Source: Utricularia gibba (taxonomy: Eukaryota; Plantae; Magnoliophyta). From it: a DNA stretch of 64,000 nt. The DNA lies in contig CM007992.1 of the NCBI GenBank assembly GCA_002189035.1, positions 1,922,001 to 1,986,000 of the forward strand, written 5' to 3'. The translations under genes and the position numbers were made by a program. Positions 320 to 64,000 of the stretch are shown here, piece by piece. Every line of letters starts with the position of its first letter. The stretch's first letter is position 1. The notes under the pieces were generated by a model, which was not told the origin of the DNA, did not search any database, and worked only from the letters and a program-made list of their open reading frames with translations.

Positions 320-900
320 TCTTATCAAGGATACATTTTTTATCACCCTCTAATCTGAAAGAGTTTAGCAACCCACAAATATGAGAAAAATTAGTGCTTA
401 AAAAGGAATCCACGTAAGTCCATTTTCAAGAGAATGATTCTTTTGCAATTTATTTAGAATGAGAAGGAATTGAAAATGATAATCCTTAAAACCCATAAGC
501 TTTACAGCTTGATAAGTTAACAAAGGTTGCTCAACTAAGTAAGAGCACATAATTTGAAAAGTTTAAGGGAAAGTATTCAAATCCTCTACTCACTCCATAA
601 TTAGGAAGATATGACCAAGAAGATGTGACTTTAGAGCCCTTTATGAGATATTCCCATGTCAATAAAGTAGCTTCGGACATTACATGCTCTATGTGTTGTA
701 ACATATTCTTCTTATAAGATCTATGGAAAATTTTTTTAGCAAATTTTTAACTTCATCATTGGTATGTAATATAAGAGTTGGGTTAAATTTGATTAAATTA
801 AAATTAAATTGTTCAAAAAAAATCCTACAAAATATGGGCTATATCTTAAATTTGAGCCCAATGACCTGGCATAGACTGTCATGACCCATGCCTAGGACCC
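320..900 (-). mobile_element. Decayed CRM-like (Ty3) LTR remnant
   Basis: 330-545 aligns loosely with the better preserved LTR at 59690-59900 (shared TTAGCAACCCA, CAAGAGAATGA, GCTTGATAAGTTAA blocks, same orientation). Boundaries approximate. Confidence 0.4.
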
Positions 901-49300: not shown

Positions 49301-50329
49301 AGGTCTTGTTGTGAAGGGCTGATGCTGGGAGTGGTTGTTAGAGAAATCGAGTTATCACTTGGACAGGCTGCAAATTCAGTGTAAGGCTCGGAAATGAGTC
49401 TTTGGACCTGGTGATTCGGTGCAGTTGCAGGACGTTCCACTGCATAATAGGAAATGAGCGAACTTCAGAGTGGCGAGAGGGAATAGTCTGAATGCGAGAG
49501 AAATCAGTGCAAATCTGAGCATCACATGCGTGTAGTGGAGTGTGCGTTGTATGCATTCTGTAACTCTGCTGTGAATTTCCAGTTGGGTGTGATAAGCCTA
49601 GGAGTTTTTTCCTAGTTTTCTGGGTTTTACTTGATACATTGCTATCTTTTACATTTGACAATAAGTTACACAGGCACTTAGAATTCAACCCTGGACAGAG
49701 AAGAAGAAAAAAGACAATAAGCCAATTAGCAAAAGCATGGCAAGTTCCCTCCGTGCACCTTCTGTCAGAAGATCACAAAACAAGGAAATACTGTTGAAAA
49801 GTCCTGATGCTGTCTGTAAGTTGTGCAGCCATCTGCTACTCCTAGGCTGAATCCATTGTGATTATTGATGTTATAACAAATTAACAATTCATATTCGAAT
49901 TATATTCAACTCAGTTAAAATCATTTATTTTTGTTTTAATAATTTAAAGAAATGAACACAAACAAAATGTATATTTAATTATTATATTGAACAAACACAA
50001 ACATGATTAATATTCGATTATGTTCGATTATAATATATAATATTATATTAAAATTATGTATTTTAAATTGATATAAAATTATAATATAAAATATGTTATA
50101 GTAATCAATATACAAACATAATATAATTATTTATGTAATATATATAATATTATAAATTATTTTTTGTATTAGTAGTTAAATCATAATATAGTTATTTTTT
50201 ATAGGGTGCCAGATTTAGAAATGAACCTCCTCATTGTTCTGCAATTGTATTGAAGTTTGACAGTGTTTTTTTAAATGGATTCGTGCCGCATTTATACTCC
50301 TGAGGAAGTGATCTACTGAATATCCTCTA

Positions 50330-51400
50330 GTAATTGGACTTATGCTCTGACATGGAACCATCTACCATGTTCTCAGCGAGCTTCAACGCATCATGCTTCT
50401 ACAGCGATCAGACATCAGTGGCATAAGGTGTTAGACCATGCAAATCTCAGTGCTATTTGCTCAATGTCTCACCACGCATCTGTGAAAGGAATACTGCTCC
50501 TTGTAAGCAAGTCTTTGGATCTGCCGTGTGCCCTTTGTGCTAAGGGGAAGTTGACACAACAACCATTGCCATATTATATGCCATTTGCTTTTGAGAAGTT
50601 CACGATCTTCAAGACCCTAGCAGAAAAGTAACGAGAACTGCCCTCAAGTGTCTCCAAACTCATAATGGAGGTGAGTTCTACTTCACATCTTTCGAAGCTT
50701 TTTATCCTCAACAACGAGGAATCACACATCATGAAACTATGACAGACACTCCTGCTCAAAACAGTGTAGCAAAATGGGAAAATCAGGACACTATGTATGG
50801 TCCGCTGTCTGCTGCTCGAGAAACAGCTACCAAAGATTTTGTGGGCAGAAGTAGTTGAAATTGTTCGGATCAGTGGTGTATTATCAGTCACCACCAATTC
50901 ACAGAGGCACCGCTGGGCAGCTTGCACTTCAGTGACAAAAACAATATAGAATTTAGAATCCTATGACGAAACAGCTCCTGATAGCCAGGAGCTTGCAAGT
51001 TGATGAAACTGACTTCTGAAATTGGACTGAAGGCTGTCAACAAGCAAACATAGAAATCCTGTGAACGCGAGTGATTTTGACATCCTAACGATTTTGACAT
51101 CCTCACTCTATATGAAGATGATTTTGAAACGCCATTCACTGATTCAAATACGGAACTAGCACCTGAGTTGGTGGATGCTAAAATTAGTTAGAGACGGGTC
51201 TAGGTATACAACCGGTGGCTGTACCACTGTCTCTCCGGCAACCTCTGAGCCACTACTTCACTCACTGCCTATCCGGACCAGAATATCGTCAGACGTGTAT
51301 GAGTGTGCTAATCAGGCAGTTTCGGAAAAAGACCCAAGCACAGTTTCTGAAGTTCTCTTAGTTCCATTGACTTCAAGCAATGTAGGATGAGCTAGAAATG
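50330..51400 (+). pseudogene. Decayed copia pre-integrase/integrase/RT-start remnant
   Basis: LDHANL, CALCAKGK, AFEKFTIFK, LQTHNGGEF, RCLLLEKQLPKILWAEVV, KDPSTVSEVL. Confidence 0.65.
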
Positions 51401-51744
51401 ATCAATAAGTTTGGAAACTGAAGGCTCGTTGTGTTGGAGTAATTGGGTATTCTTGGTGTTGATCGTATCTGATATGTTTGTGTTGTAGGTTTTGGTCGAT
51501 GAAGAAACAGATAGGTTGGGGACGTAAGGACAAATTCTGCACAGTGCGTATTCGAGGAAATGCTCCAAAGGAAGGATAACAAAGAAAAGGAATACAGAAA
51601 TTAATGCATTCTATATCAGTGTATTAGCGGATACATGATTGAGATATTGATCCTAATAACTTTTAGTAACTACAACAATTTCTGAATCTTATCCATAGTA
51701 GCCGTCTAGTAGTTTATCCTAGTTAAGTCAATTTTATCATTTAA

Positions 51745-52010
51745 CTCCTCCCTTAAGTTTGACTTCTTCACTCTAAGTAGAAACCAAAGCTTCTAAAAAA
51801 CTGTTGCCTTCAATGGTTTAGTGAAAATATTTATTATTTGGTCTTCACTCTTCACATACAGCAACTCAATCTTCTTCTTCACAACACATTCAGTTATATA
51901 ATAATACCTTGTCTCAATATGCATGCTTCTTCCATCCATGACCGGATTCCTTCCAAGAGGAATTGTAGACTTGCTATCAATCATTATCTTAGTTGGTTCA
52001 ATTGTAGATT
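51745..52010 (-). pseudogene. Copia RNase H 3' end with PPT
   Basis: IDSKSTI.L.RNPV..GRSMHIETRYYYI...ELLYVKSEDQ..NIFTKPL; AAGGGAGGAG PPT. Confidence 0.7.
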
Positions 52011-52139
52011 GTCACGCCCCTAATGTAACATACTATTGCTACTTAACGTGGCTGACTAACTTTTACCATCCACATAATGAAGAACCGAATCAGTGGAGAA
52101 ATAAAGGAAGGTGGTAGAAACAAGGAAACTGATTCTGAG

Positions 52140-53602
52140 ACATGAAGAGATTGAAGGTAATCCAAGCTACTTAACCCGTAGATTATGCTAGACATCAATA
52201 TGTGTTATGCTATATGGAGAAGGCACACGAGAATATGAAAAAAGGGATCAGCTGAGCTATGGAAAAATAATCAATCAAGTTTTTTAGTATCTTTATATAC
52301 CTATTTATTTGCAACTTTTGTACACTTTTCATTATGACAAACACTAGTGATCTAAGTCTCCCTCGTTCATCTTGCTGTTTAGATTCCCCACCTCTTCCAC
52401 AACCTTCTTCCTTTTAGTATCAGAGCAGCCCGTTGTTCATACAACTGGGTTCTTCTTCCTTGCACGCTTCCGCACACTGCTTCTCAATGGCATCCTTCAC
52501 CAATATCAACGTCGCCAACTTCATTACGGTAAAACTGAACAGCACAAACTACCCTCTATGGAAGGAGATGGCTTTGGGGCTTGCAGAAAATCAGGGAATC
52601 GATGGCCACCTCACTGGAGAGACCGCTGCACCCCTTCAATTCACTCCAATTCCTGTTGGGCAAGAACCCACAATAGCACCGCAACAGACGGAGCAATACA
52701 CCAAGTGGTGGACTGAAGATCGACTTCTGCGCAGCTGGCTTATGGGAACAATTTCTGAAGATTCATGGCCCTTAATCATGGGTTGCGAAACCTTAGCCGC
52801 TGTTTGGACAGCTCTTCAGGATGCTTATGCTCAAAATACAGAAGAGCGTCGCTACACCCTTTGATATCAACTCACGCAAAACAGGAAAAAATTTGACCAG
52901 CCTCTTAATGAGTATTTATTGAAGTTTAAATCCTTGTGTGACAATCTTGCAACAATTGGCGCTCCCATACCAGACGATGAAAAGGTCTATTGCCTCCTCA
53001 CTGGTCTCGGACCCAACTATGACGCATTCTCCACCACCATGCTCAAGGAACCACGTCCCTCCTTTAGCACAACCGTATACCTCCAAAATCACCTACCATC
53101 TCTTTCACTAAAAAGGGAGTCCCCTTTTTCAATACTTTATGACCTTAATCCTGATTATTCTATACTACGTGTCTTTGGCTCCAAATGTTTTCCATATTTA
53201 TGGGATTCCAAAAAAAATAAATTCTCACCAAAAACTTCTTTATGTGTGTTTATAGGTTACAGCGACAATCATAAAGGTTATCGGTGCTATGATCCATCAA
53301 CAAGAAAACTTCACATTTCCCGTCATGTCATATTCGATGAAACATCCTTCCCTTATCGCTCACGTGACAAATCACCGCCGCATCCTGATCTTGTATCCAA
53401 CCTCTTCGAAATTTGGACCCAAGACACACAAGAGAAGCAGGGCACCTTAATGCCTTCGTCTACTTGTCACCACCCACTCGGCGGAGACCACTCCCTACCT
53501 AGCGAAGGGCACTTGGCTGCACCAATAAATGCTGAAACTCCAGCATTTATTGAACATCATGTCCCTGTGAACACCCCTTTACGTGAAGCTAATATAGAAC
53601 TT
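52140..53602 (+). mobile_element. Ale/Retrofit-like copia, 5' part (LTR end, PBS, gag, deleted INT core, INT C-terminus)
   Basis: TAGTATCAGAGC at ~52415; ITVKLNSTNYPLWKE; DRLLRSWL..TISE; VYCLLTGLGPNY; LRVFGSKCFPYL..CVFIGYS..KGYRCYDP..ISRHVIFDE. Left boundary approximate. Confidence 0.78.
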
Positions 53603-56600
53603 TGTTGTTGCAAGAAAAATAGAGTCTTGGGAAGTAACAAAAAGGTAATGCTTATGAGATCACCTTGGATGAAAAACGACTCATGAACAATAATAATGAC
53701 CGAAAACCTAATGACACGCATTCCTAGTAGGGTTTATATATACCCAATACCTAGGTTACCCAACAGTGGGCCACAATCATTGAAAACACACAAAAAGCCC
53801 AACAACTCAAATCCAACACTTCCATGCTCGAACCCAATACCTTTTTTATCTGAAATATGACATTATGACACATGTTTAGTTCTTCCAATCACCTTCAAGG
53901 TTTGGATTGAGGCTGATCTCCAACATTCCCCCCAGACCGAGATCTCCCAATTTGAGAAAGTCTTCCATAGTCATGAGATTCATGTTCTTCCTTGCTAGCT
54001 CAAAGTGAACTCTGTTCAAACCTTTGGTGAGCCCATCAGCAAGCTGATTCCCACTCTCAACATATTGCACTTTAATCTTCTTCTCCTTGATGTAATTCCT
54101 TATGACATGATACCTGATTCTTATGTGTTTGGCTTTGCTGAAGTTCGTCGGATCCTTGGCAATGGAGATTGCAGCTCGATTATCCATAAGCAGATGTGTA
54201 GCTTCCTGTTGTATGAATCCAAGTTCGTTTAGCATCTGCCTGAACCAAACACAATAGTTCGAAGCATGTGCTGCTGAGATGTATTCTGCTTCAGCTGTTG
54301 ATTGTGCTACCACTTTTTGTTTCTTAGAAAACCAGACTACAGGGCACTTATTTAAGAAGAAGAGTGCACCAGATGTACTCTTGCTATCTTCAGCCATACC
54401 ATAATCACTATCTGAGTAGGCTCTAAGTTTCAAGACTGGTTTTTCACCTTCATAGGGATAGAACAATCCGAAATCAGTAGATGATTTTATGTACCTGAAA
54501 GCTCTTTTCACAGCTGCCATGTGAGTTGTTGTTGGTTTGTTGAGGAAGCGAGATAAGACGTTTACACAAAAACACAAGTCAGGCCTTGTATGCTGGAGAT
54601 AAATGAGGCTTCCAATCATACTTCTATAAGTAGTGGCATCCACATTCTTTCCCTGATTGTTCTCTCCAATCACTTGTTTGTAATCCAAAGGCGTTTTTGA
54701 AGGATTGACATCTTTGAACCCAAACCTTTCAAGAAGTTCATTACAGTACTTTTTCTGAGATATGAATGTTCCAACACCTTCAAGCTGATGAATTTCCATG
54801 CCTAGATAGTAAGACATCATTCCAAGGTCAGTCATTTTGAATTCATTTTTGAGCAGAGCTTTGAATTCCTCAATCTTCCTTTCATTACCTGAGGTAATCA
54901 TAAGATCATCCACATATAAGCTAATAAATAAACGATCATCTTCTTTTCCTTTAACATATAGTGAGTAATCACTATATGTTTTTCTGAAACCAATACCCTG
55001 AAGAAAGTTATCCATGCGTTCATTCCATGCTCTAGGAGCTTGCTTCAACCCATAGAGAGATTTCTTTAGCTTCAATACCTTGTCTTCATGACCTGACACT
55101 TCGAAGCCCTTTGGTTGTTCAACAAAAACAACCTCCTCCAACACACCATTCAAGAACGCAGTCTTAACATCCATGTGATGCACTTTCCATCCATGAGCAG
55201 CTGAAATGGCAAGAAGTACTTTAATCGTGTCAAATCTTGCTACTGGTGCAAAAACCTCATGAAAATTTATTCCTTTGATCTGACTATATCCCTTGGCTAC
55301 TAATCTAGCCTTATATTTGTTGATAGAACCATCTGCATTCATCTTGGTTTTGAATAACCACTTGAGGCCAATAGGTTTGAAACCTCTATCCTTGGGTTTA
55401 TCAACTAACTCCCATGTTTCATTTTCAAGTATAGAGTTCATTTCTTCCTTCATGGCCTCTCTCCATTTCGGATTTTGTACAGCCACTTCAAATGATGTTG
55501 GATCTCCTGTCAATAATGCAGCCAAAATATCAGCTACAGCATCTTGGACATCATCATTCAACTTGGAGAAACTTATTGTAGGAGCCTTGTTTCTTTTGCT
55601 TCGTCTAATGTCAGTAACATGACTATCTTCATTATCTATAGAATCTCTGATGTTTTTGCGTTTCCTCCTTTGCCAATCACGATCAGATGGGTAATAATCT
55701 TCATCATCAGTATCAGGTTCCTCTCCATCAGATTCATCTGTTGATGAGTCTTCTGCATTCGTGCCTTGCTCCTCTTCTGGGATTTCGAAATTCCCATCTG
55801 AATGTAGATCATTGGCCTTCTCCTCCTCTGGAGCTGGAAAATTCTCATCTGAATGCTGATCATTTACTTGATTTGAATCTTCATGAACGAGTTCTGAAGT
55901 TTCTTGGTTTGTTGAATTCCTGGAAGAGAAGTTTTGAGACATGTGTGTCCAGAGGTCTCCTTTCACATGGGTGCTATGCCTTCCATCACTTTTATGAGCT
56001 TCTACATCATTCAGAGAAATGCAATCATCAATTAAAGTATACCTTGCACCTTCATCAAAAGTGACATCATGGCTGAAAATAAATTTCTTCTGTTGAGGTA
56101 AATAAACTTTATATCCCTTGGTAGTGTTGCTATAACCAACAAATACACCAGATGCAGATTTCTTATCAAGTTTTCCTCGTTTTTGGTCTGGTACATGAGT
56201 AAAACACAGACTACCAAAGATTCTGAGATGATCAACCTTTTTAATATAACCATGCCATTTTTCATGCGCGGTTTTTCCACTAATCGCCCTTGAGGGAAGC
56301 AAGTTCAATAGATATACAGATGTAGATACCGCTTCAGCCCAGAAATTTACAGGAAGATCTTTCTCAAACAATAGACATCTTGACATATCAAGGATTGTTC
56401 TGTTTCTCCTTTCACATACACCATTCTGTTGTGGAGAATATGGTACGGTGAATTGATGCATGATTCCCTCATTTTCACAGAACATTCTCATGCTATTATT
56501 GTAGAATTCGCCTCCATTGTCTGATCTAATCATCTTCAAAGAGCATCCACTCTGATTCTCAATCATCACTTTGAATTTTCGAAAGATATGATGAACTTCT

Positions 56601-58906
56601 GACTTGCTTTTAAGAAAGTAAACCCAACAATAACGTGAATAATCATCAATGAATGTAACAAAATATCTACTCCCCCCTAATGAACATTCCTTAAATGGTC
56701 CACAAACATCTGTATGCACAAGCTCTAATTTCTCCTTTGCTACTGAATCACTGGAATAAAATGGCTTTCTACATTGCTTACCTTGATGGCACACTTCACA
56801 TATGGCATTAGCAAACTTGATGTCTTTCAATTCCAGTACTTCCTTATTCTTCTGCAATATTTTCAAATTGTTGAAGCTATAGTGCCCAAAACGTTTGTGC
56901 CAAAGGCTGCTTTGATCCTGAAGTGAGAAAATACAACTTTTATGATCACTGACCATGATTTGGTAGAGGTTGTAGGTGGTCAACACAGCATGGAATTCAA
57001 TCTTCGTTTTTGGATCAGCAACCTTAACTTTAGTGGTTATACCACCAGCATCCTTCATCAGCTCAATGTCAAAACCTTGCCTGCTCAATTGGCCAAAGCT
57101 CAACAGGTTCTGTTTGAGGTTTGGTGAATAATAAACATCATCAACTTGAACAATTCCTTCTTTTAGCAAGAGTAAAATGCTTCCTTTGCCCACAATGCCA
57201 ATATTTTCACCAGTGCACGTGCTTACCTCCTTCCCAATCCTTTCAAGCTTGAGAAATGACCTTGTATCACAACATACATAATAGGAGGCACCAGAGTCCA
57301 AGTACCAACCTTTAGCATCTGAGGCTACTGTCATTAGAGCACACTCATACTCAAAAGGATTTTCAAAAGATATTTCTGGCTCATCTTCAAAGTAGGTAAA
57401 GGATGCATGTGATTTCTCTTCCCTGGAAGTAGTCTTCTTGTTATGTTCAACTTTTATTGGATTGGACATTCCACATACCTTATTAAGATGGCCTCTTTGA
57501 TTGCATTTCGTGCACAAAGCACCAGGCTTCCACCAACAAAACTCACTCCTGTGATTCTGTTTGTTGCAATGCTTGCAAGCATTTGTGCTTAAAGTCCAAC
57601 AATCTTCACTCTTATGGTTGGATTTGTCACAATGCCTGCACTTCTGATTGCCCATCGTTGATGTTTGGATTGACGTTGGTGATTGTTTGATGGCTGTTGA
57701 CTTGACATCTTTGACATTGTTAATTGCACCTGAGGTTACATTCATATTCTGCATTTTGGTGAGGAGAGCAGCTTCACCATAAGTTTTCTCAACTTCATAA
57801 CCATCTCTTAGTTCCAATCTCTTTTCTGTAGATTGCAACTCAATCATGAACTCTCTAAATGTTGGCTCTGGTGTAACAGGATATTCAGGATACAGCTGAT
57901 GGAGCTTTCCTTCAATAATGTCAAAGATTTTTCTTTCTGTCTCAAGTGCACATAACTTTGGCTCGAATCTTGCAGGTAGGCTCATGATTGCCTTGCTAAT
58001 CACCTTTTGATCCTCAAGTTTTTCCCCCAATCCTCGAATCTCCTTCACAAGCTTCGCAGTACGTTCATAATAGACTTGTATGGTTTCATTGTCTAACATT
58101 TTGTTCCTCTCAAAGTCCTCCAGCTTGTTTTTGCATAATATCTCTCTGAGTTTGGCATCGCCTTCATAATGGGATTTGAGAGTATCCCATATTTCTTTTG
58201 CTGATTGACACTCTGCAATATCATCAAATAGATGTTCAGAGATGGCTTGATACAAGGCATCCATTGCTTCATCTTTTCTCTGTTGAAGATACTCAGCTTC
58301 CTCTTGCTGTTCTGATGTGGATTTGCTTGTTATTGTAATAGCCGGAATCTCCCTTTCAACAACATCCCAAATCTTTCTGACCCGAAGGTAGCTGCGCATC
58401 TTTTTGACCCAGCTTCCATACTCTGAACCATCAAATATTGGAGGTCCTCTACCAGATGCCATCATAGCCACCGCTTGACAAGCTTTGGGTTGATACTTGG
58501 TAGTCCACCAGGTAAAAAACGCTGAACGGTATATAAAATACTGAAACGAACACAGGTTTGAGAACCTTACTGCTCTGATACCATGTTATTGCAAGAAAAA
58601 TAGAGTCTTGGGAAGTAACAAAAAGGTAATGCTTATGAGATCACCTTGGATGAAAAACGACTCATGAACAATAATAATGACCGAAAACCTAATGACACGC
58701 ATTCCTAGTAGGGTTTATATATACCCAATACCTAGGTTACCCAACAGTGGACCACAATCATTGAAAACACACAAAAAGCCCAACAACTCAAATCCAACAC
58801 TTCCATGCTCGAACCCAATACCTTTTTTATCTGAAATATGACATTATGACACATGTTTAGTTCTTCCAATCACCTTCAAGGTTTGGATTGAGGCTGATCT
58901 CCAACA
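53603..58906 (-). mobile_element. Young full-length Ty1/copia element, copy 1 (5304 bp)
   Basis: 323-bp LTRs 58584-58906 and 53603-53925 (2 differences seen); PBS TGGTATCAGAGCA (58571-58583); PPT GGGGGGAA; intact ORF. Confidence 0.97.
53876..58465 (-). CDS. gag-pol: Intact copia gag-pol polyprotein (~1529 aa from first ATG)
   Basis: Single ORF: gag, CCHC knuckles, WYLDSGAS protease, WHKRFGH pre-integrase, HTDVCGP/SDNGGEF integrase, MDVKTAFLNG/LYVDD RT, ADGLTKGL RNase H. Confidence 0.95.
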   Translation of the reverse strand: MMASGRGPPIFDGSEYGSWVKKMRSYLRVRKIWDVVEREIPAITITSKSTSEQQEEAEYLQQRKDEAMDALYQAISEHLFDDIAECQSAKEIWDTLKSHYEGDAKLREILCKNKLEDFERNKMLDNETIQVYYERTAKLVKEIRGLGEKLEDQKVISKAIMSLPARFEPKLCALETERKIFDIIEGKLHQLYPEYPVTPEPTFREFMIELQSTEKRLELRDGYEVEKTYGEAALLTKMQNMNVTSGAINNVKDVKSTAIKQSPTSIQTSTMGNQKCRHCDKSNHKSEDCWTLSTNACKHCNKQNHRSEFCWWKPGALCTKCNQRGHLNKVCGMSNPIKVEHNKKTTSREEKSHASFTYFEDEPEISFENPFEYECALMTVASDAKGWYLDSGASYYVCCDTRSFLKLERIGKEVSTCTGENIGIVGKGSILLLLKEGIVQVDDVYYSPNLKQNLLSFGQLSRQGFDIELMKDAGGITTKVKVADPKTKIEFHAVLTTYNLYQIMVSDHKSCIFSLQDQSSLWHKRFGHYSFNNLKILQKNKEVLELKDIKFANAICEVCHQGKQCRKPFYSSDSVAKEKLELVHTDVCGPFKECSLGGSRYFVTFIDDYSRYCWVYFLKSKSEVHHIFRKFKVMIENQSGCSLKMIRSDNGGEFYNNSMRMFCENEGIMHQFTVPYSPQQNGVCERRNRTILDMSRCLLFEKDLPVNFWAEAVSTSVYLLNLLPSRAISGKTAHEKWHGYIKKVDHLRIFGSLCFTHVPDQKRGKLDKKSASGVFVGYSNTTKGYKVYLPQQKKFIFSHDVTFDEGARYTLIDDCISLNDVEAHKSDGRHSTHVKGDLWTHMSQNFSSRNSTNQETSELVHEDSNQVNDQHSDENFPAPEEEKANDLHSDGNFEIPEEEQGTNAEDSSTDESDGEEPDTDDEDYYPSDRDWQRRKRKNIRDSIDNEDSHVTDIRRSKRNKAPTISFSKLNDDVQDAVADILAALLTGDPTSFEVAVQNPKWREAMKEEMNSILENETWELVDKPKDRGFKPIGLKWLFKTKMNADGSINKYKARLVAKGYSQIKGINFHEVFAPVARFDTIKVLLAISAAHGWKVHHMDVKTAFLNGVLEEVVFVEQPKGFEVSGHEDKVLKLKKSLYGLKQAPRAWNERMDNFLQGIGFRKTYSDYSLYVKGKEDDRLFISLYVDDLMITSGNERKIEEFKALLKNEFKMTDLGMMSYYLGMEIHQLEGVGTFISQKKYCNELLERFGFKDVNPSKTPLDYKQVIGENNQGKNVDATTYRSMIGSLIYLQHTRPDLCFCVNVLSRFLNKPTTTHMAAVKRAFRYIKSSTDFGLFYPYEGEKPVLKLRAYSDSDYGMAEDSKSTSGALFFLNKCPVVWFSKKQKVVAQSTAEAEYISAAHASNYCVWFRQMLNELGFIQQEATHLLMDNRAAISIAKDPTNFSKAKHIRIRYHVIRNYIKEKKIKVQYVESGNQLADGLTKGLNRVHFELARKNMNLMTMEDFLKLGDLGLGGMLEISLNPNLEGDWKN

Positions 58907-59685
58907 GTTTTTCCACCCTATTCTTCCTTGTGTGATGGTCCAGCAGGGCTCGTCCTTCTGGTCTTAGTGCCTCAACTCTGTTTAGAGTCCCTAAAATTCT
59001 TTTTTCAAAACCTAAATTTGGTGCCCTTGTTGGTCGGTTTCCAAACAAGCGTTTCCTTTCAAGGTGTATAAAGTGCTCAATGTTCATTGTTATGTGCTAT
59101 GTGTATACATTACGAAATGGAGAGGAGTGTGGCTCGAGTGTGGACCCACACTCCTAGCAACATGGTAAACTTGCATCCTTTTGCCACCAATCGTGCCTTC
59201 AGTCGATTGAGAGATCCGTTGGGGTTAAGATTTGCTTTGTATACCCACTTGCATCCAATTATATGTTGTGCAGTGTTGCGAGGTACAAGAGACCATGTTT
59301 TGTTGCGATGTAGGGCGTCCAACTCCTCAAGCATAGCTGCTTTCCATCCTGGGTGATTGAGCGCCTCTTTGATCCCTTTTGGCTCCAAGGGGATTGTACT
59401 GTAATGCTCCATGTAAAGTGTATACTTGGGGTTTGGTTTGATTATTCCTCGTTGTGATCGAGTGGTCATGGCATGTGAACGCTGTGGAGAAGACACATTA
59501 GTTACAACAGGAGCATCAGGAAATTCTGGTACCTCAAGGTTGTCGTACGGTTCTTGGCGACCCGCTATTGTTCCTTGTGTGGCATGCTGTGGTGAGGGCA
59601 GCGGTTCTAGAACAAGTGATGAAGGAGATGGAACGGGGTGAATGTGCTATGAGAAAGGGGTACTAGTCTCTCTGATTTCAGTTTC

Positions 59686-60292
59686 TGATGTGACCTTTTA
59701 ATCTATTGAGATTAGCAACCCATAAACAAGAGGTGATTTTGAAATTTAGAAAGGAACCCACTCAAGTCTACTCTCAAGAGAATGAATCTCTTGCAACCAA
59801 ACTTCAAAACAAAGAAAATTAAGAGCCACACTTCAGAAAAAACAAGGGATTGGAAGTGATAATCCTAGGAAGCTACAAGCTCAAAGCTTGATAAGTTAAG
59901 AGTGTACAAGCACTCGAAGAAGAGGAGAATCCTCACAACATACATCAAATGACTAAAAGTCCCTCAAAGACTATATCTCTAGAGTATTTATACTCTAGAA
60001 TTGGGCTCCAACATTACAAAGCCCAAACTAAATAAGATAGGAAAGCCTACAAGGCCAATAACACCCATGGAAGAATGGATGATGTTTTGGGCTTTAAGTT
60101 GGATTGAGACTCCAATAGTTGAACTCCTTTGATGGTAATATGTCAGGCTCAATGTTGTTTCCAATTGTGTTGAGTAGACTCTTACTTCTTATAATTGGTC
60201 CTGGTGAAATGATATTTGTCTCTAATGTGTTCAATTGGTCAAACTCCTCATCATCCTTTAAATACACTTCCTTATCTTCTTGGGACTCATCA
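59686..60292 (-). mobile_element. CRM-like solo LTR (607 bp)
   Basis: TGAT...ATCA termini; TSD GTTTC/GTTTT (4/5); encodes GPIIRSKS resembling the CRM GPITRARAK motif inside the LTR; removal restores the Ale frame MKT-EIRE. Confidence 0.72.
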
Positions 60293-60316
60293 GTTTTCAT
60301 GCTCACGGGTGCATCA

Positions 60317-60502
60317 CCGTCATCACCATGAGTTGTGGCTTGAGCTGTGTTAAGTTCAGATCCATCGAAGGTTCCTTCACCAAATGAAGTAGCAGTCATC
60401 ATTGTCGTCCCATCATCACCATCGGTTGTGGCTTGAGCGGCGTTGAGTTCAGAGCCATCGAAGGTGCCTTCACCAAATGAAGTAGCAGTCATCATTGTCG
60501 TC
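60317..60502. repeat. 93-bp tandem duplication (2 copies) in Ale linker
   Basis: Encodes TTMMTATSFGEGTFDGSELN(A/T)AQATT(D/H)GDDG twice. Confidence 0.9.
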
Positions 60503-60521
60503 CCTGAAACATTGGGAAGTT

Positions 60522-63500
60522 TGTTGGAGATCAGCCTCAATCCAAACCTTGAAGGTGATTGGAAGAACTAAACATGTGTCATAATGTCATATTTCAGATA
60601 AAAAAGGTATTGGGTTCGAGCATGGAAGTGTTGGATTTGAGTTGTTGGGCTTTTTGTGTGTTTTCAATGATTGTGGCCCACTGTTGGGTAACCTAGGTAT
60701 TGGGTATATATAAACCCTACTAGGAATGCGTGTCATTAGGTTTTCGGTCATTATTATTGTTCATGAGTCGTTTTTCATCCAAGGTGATCTCATAAGCATT
60801 ACCTTTTTGTTACTTCCCAAGACTCTATTTTTCTTGCAATAACATGGTATCAGAGCAGTAAGGTTCTCAAACCTGTGTTCGTTTCAGTATTTTATATACC
60901 GTTCAGCGTTTTTTACCTGGTGGACTACCAAGTATCAACCCAAAGCTTGTCAAGCGGTGGCTATGATGGCATCTGGTAGAGGACCTCCAATATTTGATGG
61001 TTCAGAGTATGGAAGCTGGGTCAAAAAGATGCGCAGCTACCTTCGGGTCAGAAAGATTTGGGATGTTGTTGAAAGGGAGATTCCGGCTATTACAATAACA
61101 AGCAAATCCACATCAGAACAGCAAGAGGAAGCTGAGTATCTTCAACAGAGAAAAGATGAAGCAATGGATGCCTTGTATCAAGCCATCTCTGAACATCTAT
61201 TTGATGATATTGCAGAGTGTCAATCAGCAAAAGAAATATGGAATACTCTCAAATCCCATTATGAAGGCGATGCCAAACTCAGAGAGATATTATGCAAAAA
61301 CAAGCTGGAGGACTTTGAGAGCAACAAAATGTTAGACAATGAAACCATACAAGTCTATTATGAACGTACTGCGAAGCTTGTGAAGGAGATTCGAGGATTG
61401 GGGGAAAAACTTGAGGATCAAAAGGTGATTAGCAAGGCAATCATGAGCCTACCTGCAAGATTCGAGCCAAAGTTATGTGCATTTGAGACAGAAAGAAAAA
61501 TCTTTGACATTATTGAAGGAAAGCTCCATCAGCTGTATCCTGAATATCCTGTTTTACCAGAGCCAACATTTAGAGAGTTCATGATTCAGTTGCAATCTAC
61601 AGAAAAGAGATTGGAACTAAGAGATGGTTATGAAGTTGAGAAAACTTATGGTGAAGCTGCTCTCCTCACCAAAATGCAGAATATGAATGTAACCTCAGGT
61701 GCAATTAACAATGTCAAAGATGTCAAGTCAACAGCCATCAAACAATCACCAACGTCAATCCAAACATCAACGATGGGCAATCAGAAGTGCAGGCATTGTG
61801 ACAAATCCAACCATAAGAGTGAAGATTGTTGGACTTTAAGCACAAATGCTTGCAAGCATTGCAACAAACAGAATCACAGGAGTGAGTTTTGTTGGTGGAA
61901 GCCTGATGCTTTGTGCACGAAATGCAATCAAAGAGGCCATCTTGATAAGGTATGTGGAATGTCCAATTCAATAAAAGTTGAACATAACAAGAAGACTACT
62001 TCCAGGGAAGAGAAATCACATGCATCCTTTACCTACTTTGAAGATGAGCCAGAAATATCTTTTGAAAATCCTTTTGAGTATGAGTGTGCTCTAATGACAG
62101 TAGCCTCAGATGCTAAAGATTGGTACTTGGACTCTGGTGCCTCCTATCATGTATGTTGTGATACAAGGTCATTTCTCAAGCTTGAAAGGATTGGGAAGGA
62201 GGTAAGCACGTGCACTGGTGAAAATATTGGCACTGTGGGCAAAGGAAGCATTTTACTCTTGCTAAAAGAAGGAATTGTTCAAGTTGATGATGTTTATTAT
62301 TCACCAAACCTCAAACAGAACCTGTTGAGCTTTGGCCAATTGAGCAGGCAAGGTTTTGACATTGAGCTGATGAAGGATGCTGGTGGTATAACCACTAAAG
62401 TTAAGGTTGCTGATCCAAAAACGAAGATTGAATTCCATGCTGTGTTGACCACCTACAACCTCTACCAAATCATGGTCAGTGATCATAAAAGTTGTATTTT
62501 CTCACTTCAGGATCAAAGCAGCCTTTGGCACAAACGTTTTGGGCACTATAGCTTCAACAATTTGAAAATATTGCAGAAGAATAAGGAAGTACTGGAATTG
62601 AAAGACATCAAGTTTGCTAATGCCATATGTGAAGTGTGCCATCAAGGTAAGCAATGTAGAAAGCCGTTTTATTCCAGTGATTCAGTAGCAAAGGAGAAAT
62701 TAGAGCTTGTGCATACAGATGTTTGTGGACCATTTAAGGAATGTTCATTAGGGGGAGTAGATATTTTGTTACATTCATTGATGATTATTCACGTTATTGT
62801 TGGGTTTACTTTCTTAAAAGCAAGTCAGAAGTTCATCATATCTTTCGAAAATTCAAAGTGATGATTGAGAATCAGAGTGGATGCTCTTTGAAGATGATTA
62901 GATCAGACAATGGAGGCGAATTCTACAATAATAGCATGAGAATGTTCTGTGAAAATGAGGGAATCATGCATCAATTCACCGTACCATATTCTCCACAACA
63001 GAATGGTGTATGTGAAAGGAGAAACAGAACAATCCTTGATATGTCAAGATGTCTATTGTTTGAGAAAGATCTTCCTGTAAATTTCTGGGCTGAAGCGGTA
63101 TCTACATCTGTATATCTATTGAACTTGCTTCCCTCAAGGGCGATTAGTGGAAAAACCGCGCATGAAAAATGGCATGGTTATATTAAAAAGGTTGATCATT
63201 TCAGAATCTTTGGTAGTCTGTGTTTTACTCATGTACCAGACCAAAAACGAGGAAAACTTGATAAGAAATCTGCATCTGGTGTATTTGTTGGTTATAGCAA
63301 CACTACCAAGGGATATAAAGTTTATTTACCTCAACAGAAGAAATTTATTTTCAGCCATGATGTCACTTTTGATGAAGGTGCAAGGTATACTTTAATTGAT
63401 GATTGCATTTCTCTGAATGATGTAGAAGCTCATAAAAGTGATGGAAGGCATAGCACCCATGGGAAAGGAGACCTCTGGACACACATGTCTCAAAACTTCT

Positions 63501-64000
63501 CTTAAATAAGTGCCCTGTAGTCTGGTTTTCGAAGAAACAAAAAGTGGTAGCACAATCAACAGCTGAAGCAGAATACATCTCAGCAGCACATGCTTCGAAC
63601 TATTGTGTTTGGTTCAGGCAGATGCTAAACGAACTTGGATTCATACAACAGGAAGCTACACATCTGCTTATGGATAATCGAGCTGCAATCTCCATTGCCA
63701 AGGATCCGACGAACTTCAGCAAAGCCAAACACATAAGAATCAGGTATCATGTCATAAGTAATTACATCAAGGAGAAGAAGATTAAAGTGCAATATGTTGA
63801 GAGTGGGAATCAGCTTGCTGATGGGCTCACCAAAGGTTTGAACAGAGTTCACTTTGAGCTAGCAAGGAAGAACATGAATCTCATGATTATGGAAGACTTT
63901 CTCAAATTGGGAGATCTCGGTCTGGGAAGGAATGTTGGAGATCAGCCTCAATCCAAACCTTGAAGGTGATTGGAAGAACTAAACATGTGTCATAATGTCA
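60522..64000 (+). mobile_element. Young Ty1/copia element, copy 2, internally deleted; 3' LTR runs off window
   Basis: 5' LTR 60522-60844; PBS 60845-60857; 3' LTR starts 63933; ~99% identical to copy 1 in opposite orientation. Confidence 0.96.
60963..63963 (+). pseudogene. gag-pol: Disrupted gag-pol of copy 2
   Basis: 1-bp loss in the G run near 62751 shifts the frame in integrase; a 1570-bp deletion at ~63503 removes RT; the RNase H end is retained. Confidence 0.92.

Follow-up and report, generated by a model that had tools for sequence, protein, structure and literature searches.

A Head-to-Head Pair of copia Copies

Toward the right-hand end of a 64-kb stretch of Utricularia gibba DNA (GCA_002189035.1, contig CM007992.1, positions 1,922,001-1,986,000 of the forward strand), two copies of a young copia retrotransposon family stand head to head inside an older copia element, and the 1.6 kb that separates them has probably been inverted by recombination between the two. 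The whole stretch is referred to as the window, and all coordinates given are window coordinates. Throughout the window, copia fragments of either orientation are densely nested. The inverted pair was located by a repeat search of 50000-64000, direct reading of the element ends, and a script. The search matched copy 1 to copy 2 in inverted orientation over arms of 2243, 753, and 427 nt that are 99-100% identical; it also returned direct repeats of 300 nt that lie 4981 bp apart. The two copies and their parts, including long terminal repeats (LTRs), primer-binding sites (PBSs), and the main open reading frame (ORF), are as follows.

53603-58906, minus strand: copy 1, copia element of 5304 bp (repeat search, direct reading)
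53603-53925, minus strand: copy 1 3′ LTR, 323 bp
53926-53938, minus strand: copy 1 polypurine tract (G-rich), just inside the 3′ LTR
53876-58471, minus strand: copy 1 open gag-pol ORF, 1531 aa
58572-58583, minus strand: copy 1 PBS, TGGTATCAGAGC
58584-58906, minus strand: copy 1 5′ LTR, 323 bp
60522-64000, plus strand: copy 2, same copia family, cut by the window end
60522-60844, plus strand: copy 2 5′ LTR, 323 bp
60845-60856, plus strand: copy 2 PBS, TGGTATCAGAGC
from 63933, plus strand: copy 2 3′ LTR, 68 bp inside the window, expected end 64255

The LTRs of both copies have the termini TGTTGGAG...AACA (TGTTGG...AACA, with TG...CA ends), and the PBS that the copies share is presumably a match to initiator tRNA-Met (tRNA-iMet). 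A G-rich tract lies ahead of the 3′ LTR in copy 2 as it does in copy 1. The polyprotein of copy 1 carries its Pfam domains in the order Retrotran_gag_2, Pol_BBD (the protease region), gag_pre-integrs, rve, SH3_retrovirus, and RVT_2, which is the copia order. By their LTR ends, PBS, polypurine tract, and the placement of integrase before RVT_2, both young copies are Ty1/copia LTR retrotransposons. The gag-pol frame of copy 1 is wholly open and extends 49 nt into the element's own 3′ LTR. A word search of a protein collection with the copy 1 polyprotein returned distant relatives only, at 42% identity or less in the longest alignments, and exact-product look-ups of the ATG-start polyprotein of copy 1 and of the 634-aa and 254-aa ORFs of copy 2 matched no record. 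Because no protein exceeded 42% over a long alignment, the young family seems to be unannotated, with no gene model of the locus in the collection.

An earlier note on this DNA had described the pair as near-identical. In sequence the description holds, with 99.4% identity and about 20 substitutions in the 3479 bp of the alignment (0.6%), but in structure it does not, for copy 2 is without 1570 bp and has a further 1-bp gap. The missing segment corresponds to copy 1 coordinates 54358-55927, with its junction at 63499/63500 in copy 2, and has taken with it the linker, the reverse transcriptase, and some of RNase H; the edges of the deletion carry short imperfect microhomology. Apart from this large deletion, the only frameshift in copy 2 is a run one G short at 62750 (G5 at 62745-62750 versus G6 at 56677-56682 in copy 1), and this missing G may be an artefact. 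Further comparisons come from public sequencing runs, in which window positions 58850-64000 were set against four of eight runs from one organism, all in the form of short Logan contigs. Relative to the family majority in these runs, for which the letters are incompletely listed, copy 2 has 8 private substitutions and the 1-bp gap, and copy 1 and copy 2 agree with each other in many letters unlike the majority. In one of the runs (X1), the depth of the young family is about 10-40× that of unique sequence.

Flanks of the Copies and the Older Host Element

The sequences that abut the LTR ends do not pair in the way expected for two undisturbed insertions. Three of these 5-bp flanks fall inside the window, and they are labeled here by the insertion (A or B) to which we assign them.

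53598-53602, plus strand: AACTT, duplication of insertion A, left flank of copy 1
58907-58911, plus strand: GTTTT (AAAAC in reverse complement), taken to be one copy of duplication B
60517-60521, plus strand: AAGTT, read as the other copy of duplication A, which now adjoins copy 2

On the plus strand the layout is AACTT, copy 1, and GTTTT, followed farther on by AAGTT and copy 2. Direct reading and a script both confirmed these three flanks, which the earlier note had given. Copy 1 is not surrounded by a matching 5-bp duplication (AAAAC versus AAGTT in element orientation). The AACTT at its left is the exact reverse complement, in 5/5 bases, of the AAGTT that precedes copy 2, and at the present base composition the probability that a 5-mer matches exactly at a given position is about 0.0014-0.0019. 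All three visible junctions coincide exactly with LTR termini, as integration junctions do, and therefore point to two true integrations and not to a random break or a fold-back duplication. One exchanged pair of duplications is thus in view (AACTT/AAGTT), and the partner of GTTTT is expected at about 64256-64260, some 256 bp past the window end.

The DNA into which the two copies inserted is itself a copia element, older and already degraded. Its recognizable parts are found in two places, one to the left of copy 1 and the other in the spacer between the copies.

52415-53602, plus strand: host left part (PBS-like site, gag, SH3, and linker ORF)
52415-52426, plus strand: host PBS-like site, TAGTATCAGAGC
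52679-52861, plus strand: host gag fragment (match to Pfam Retrotran_gag_2 with E 1.7e-05, which falls below the curated cut-off)
52919-53686, plus strand: host linker ORF, with a codon that ends at 53602 (...REANIEL)
53147-53356, plus strand: host integrase SH3-like domain (SH3_retrovirus, E 1.6e-29)
58907-60521, minus strand: spacer, next part of the host, 1615 bp
59304 to 59173, minus strand: start of the host reverse transcriptase, 39% identity to copy 1 residues 990-1071
60094-60540, minus strand: spacer linker ORF (linker from 60516 to 60097), with a codon that starts at 60516 (PNVSGTT...), just past AAGTT

The left part of the host is 38% identical to copy 1 residues 712-807. Within it, gag passes almost directly into the C-terminal SH3 region of integrase (52864-53147), which marks the host as a deleted remnant whose loss of protease and integrase core preceded the young insertions or was independent of them. 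The earlier note, in which the host bears the putative lineage label Ale, had placed it on the plus strand as far as 53602 and on the minus strand in the spacer, and the order of its domains and ORFs bears out this placement. Flipping the spacer yields the sequence SH3, linker, and start of reverse transcriptase, which is the correct copia order and is in phase: one linker ORF has a codon ending at 53602 and the other a codon starting at 60516, so the claim that the flip restores the reading frame also stands. This phase comparison took the two ORF pieces separately, without a joined host sequence. In the first 420 nt of the spacer linker, the host frame contains 0 stops and the other two frames contain 10 and 19. 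The recognizable reverse transcriptase of the host amounts to 44 residues only. No other copy of the host family was found within the window, and the 140-aa ORF of the spacer matched nothing in a protein word search.

Sequence of the spacer was found in runs X1 and X4, in X4 without differences. The X1 contig, otherwise 99% identical, has 16 extra letters (ATTGTTTCTTCAAAGG) behind 59015; either X1 represents a different accession or haplotype or the assembly is without these letters.

A Probable Inversion Between the Copies

We consider it probable that the two copies inserted independently and that homologous recombination between them later inverted the 1.6-kb spacer. In the order of events that we infer, two sister copies of the young family would have entered the old, already degraded host independently, about 1.6 kb apart and in opposite orientation, and each would have generated its own 5-bp duplication, AACTT at insertion A and AAAAC at insertion B. 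At a later time, a single crossover somewhere within the inverted copies would have flipped the segment between the crossover points, that is, the 5′ parts of both copies along with the spacer. The outcome would be two chimeric copies with swapped inner flanks and the next 1.6 kb of the host on the opposite strand. The homology available for such an exchange is 3.5 kb of inverted sequence at greater than 99% identity. Two opposite insertions followed by a flip of the spacer is also what the earlier note had proposed, and everything visible in the window fits this history (the junctions at LTR ends, the swapped duplication, and the in-phase host); it is the most economical reading but is not thereby proven. 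That note had also offered template switching as a route to the inversion, and the evidence in the window would appear to fit recombination and template switching alike.

The LTRs themselves bear on the exchange and on its age. Three full LTRs lie in the window, and they differ at two positions. At LTR position 156 there is a T in the 5′ LTR of copy 1 and a C in the other two LTRs. At LTR position 319, five bases from the LTR end, there is a C in the 3′ LTR of copy 1 (53607) and a T in both 5′ LTRs (58588 in copy 1 and 60840 in copy 2). The cross pair made up of the copy 1 3′ LTR and the copy 2 5′ LTR consequently has 1 difference and copy 1's own LTR pair has 2 differences, and these letters would slightly favor the cross pairing. 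Most of the family, as judged from the four public runs, carries C at position 319, so that the T common to both 5′ LTRs is a rare derived letter and marks the copies as close sisters. Every history of this position needs at least one extra mutation or conversion event. An LTR divergence of 1-2 sites in 323 would make the event a recent one. With the rate customary for rice LTRs, it suggests an age of some 0.1-0.2 million years, which is a very rough figure.

Several points weigh against an inversion. The count of 1 versus 2 LTR differences is not significant, and among three LTRs each difference is a singleton, such that these letters neither demonstrate chimerism nor speak against it. The fourth flank, which is predicted to be AAAAC after the 3′ LTR of copy 2, is not seen; metagenomes yielded 0 matches to the LTR end, whether or not AAAAC was included, and a scan of viral contigs yielded 0 matches. 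The last 240 bp of the spacer (58907-59149) is without detectable similarity to reverse transcriptase, so that the host is a putative target for insertion B, and no uninterrupted relative of the host was found that would prove the two pieces to have once been joined. Lastly, no listed contig from the four runs bridges a junction or a whole copy, and the assembly is the sole source of the arrangement.

Alternative Explanations

This last point is shared with the explanation that the inversion occurred in the assembly and not in the plant. The spacer would truly lie in the host orientation, both insertions would have perfect duplications, and the reads would have been misjoined through the near-identical inverted repeats. 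A flip within the repeats reproduces every junction sequence in the window, and since the four LTR-flank junctions are the same in either orientation, a real inversion and an assembly flip look alike to short reads. A crossover within the repeats makes no new junction sequence, and therefore only molecules that span a whole copy distinguish the two. Short Logan contigs cannot span a copy of 3.7-5.3 kb, the public runs hold no spanning record, and the G6-to-G5 frameshift in copy 2 is what might be expected of a noisy long-read assembly. However, not one N interrupts the 64 kb of nested repeats in the window, a sign of long reads, for which a span of 5.3 kb would be normal. The 1570-bp deletion and the approximately 20 substitutions between the copies also give an assembler anchors, and errors of this kind arise mainly where repeats exceed the read length. 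We therefore regard an assembly flip as unlikely. A related possibility is that the flip is real and still going on, with both orientations present among individuals or accessions by way of the 3.5-5.3 kb inverted repeats and the assembly capturing one isomer. The evidence for an inversion applies equally here, high identity and a short spacer favor repeated exchange, and the 16-nt indel of X1 at 59015 would mean that accessions do differ at this locus. The orientation, on the other hand, is known from the assembly alone, and we give a recurrent or polymorphic flip little credence.

It can also be asked whether an inversion is needed at all. The spacer might be a different old copia element on the minus strand that shares the 5-bp match with copy 1's flank by chance, and the question is a fair one, given that copia fragments of either orientation crowd the window and that no relative across the rejoined site was found. 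Such an account needs four simultaneous coincidences: agreement at 5/5 bases (about 0.002), a frame that is both open and in phase (1 in 3), a next domain that is the right one and rightly oriented, and the lack of an own duplication around copy 1. It is very hard to credit. A model of inverted duplication was rejected, since a random break would have had to fall precisely on the LTR terminus at 58906.

Relation to Known Systems

Work by Devos and by Ma and Bennetzen reportedly traced solo LTRs and recombinant elements with non-matching duplications in Arabidopsis and rice to unequal or ectopic recombination among LTR retrotransposons. A complete LTR element without matching 5-bp duplications is a standard mark of inter-element recombination and a standard finding in plant genomes. 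Copy 1 resembles these recombinants in being complete without matching duplications and in belonging to a young family inside a nest. The orientation of the copies sets the present case apart: recombination between copies in direct orientation deletes DNA, whereas inverted copies would give an inversion without loss. For inversions, the closest comparison is with Galileo of Drosophila buzzatii, whose 2z3, 2j, and 2q7 inversions arose by ectopic recombination between oppositely oriented copies (PMC2775673). The accepted criteria for a transposon-mediated inversion of this type are copies in opposite orientation, exchanged duplications, and chimeric copies (PMC2775673). As with Galileo, the segment in U. 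gibba that would have been inverted is bounded by two opposite homologous copies, and one target-site duplication is the reverse complement of the other copy's flank (PMC2775673). Unlike Galileo, a transposon of the cut-and-paste type that inverted a chromosomal segment with genes, the copies here are LTR retrotransposons and the segment is 1.6 kb of dead transposon. The Galileo work also showed the non-inverted parental arrangement, the fourth flank, and chimerism, whereas the present case is read from three flanks of one assembly.

Swapped duplications around inverted copies are the standard sign by which a well-known mechanism is recognized (PMC2775673), and the inversion would be an ordinary event and another instance of it. 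It would be confined to dead transposon sequence in a nest, with no evident effect on a gene. If true, it provides a clean, small example of how pairs of young retrotransposons reshuffle plant DNA without loss, and one that comes with a rough clock. Its practical value is as an assembly check. For annotation, the lesson is that the lack of matching duplications around a complete element is compatible with a normal insertion followed by recombination.

A different kind of consequence can be imagined for the pair itself. Mu killer of maize is an inverted duplication of a transposon that yields hairpin RNA, and in the U. gibba pair a transposon family that is young and apparently coding-competent likewise forms a long inverted repeat with near-perfect arms. 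The 5′ LTRs of both copies face outward, and a hairpin at the pair would therefore need read-through from outside. Such read-through could enter on the plus strand from the region of the host 5′ LTR, to the left of 52415, or else from neighboring elements; the transcript would cross copy 1 in antisense, the spacer, and copy 2 in sense, giving a hairpin of about 3.5 kb and small RNAs against the young family. We attach a low probability to this speculative idea, in which the pair would serve as a hairpin locus of natural origin and a Mu-killer-like silencer of its own family.

Minor Features of the Spacer

The spacer contains two further repeats. Between about 59650 and 60095, the host coding sequence is broken by a high-copy repeat some 450 bp long, for which neither clear terminal repeats nor a duplication could be found. 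Its contig depth in runs X4 to X6 is 50-100× that of the neighboring unique spacer, and it resembles window positions 345-520 at 74-79%. The host linker, in turn, contains a 93-bp tandem duplication at 60317-60502, with two units that are 91% identical and in frame and that repeat a 31-aa block (TTMMTATSFGEGTFDGSELN...). The contigs of X1 and X4 both end at 60403, which is the unit boundary of this tandem duplication. At the other end of the spacer, X4 has a loose end at 58938, of which 30 letters are visible, and these resemble a host-family paralogue heading for site B.

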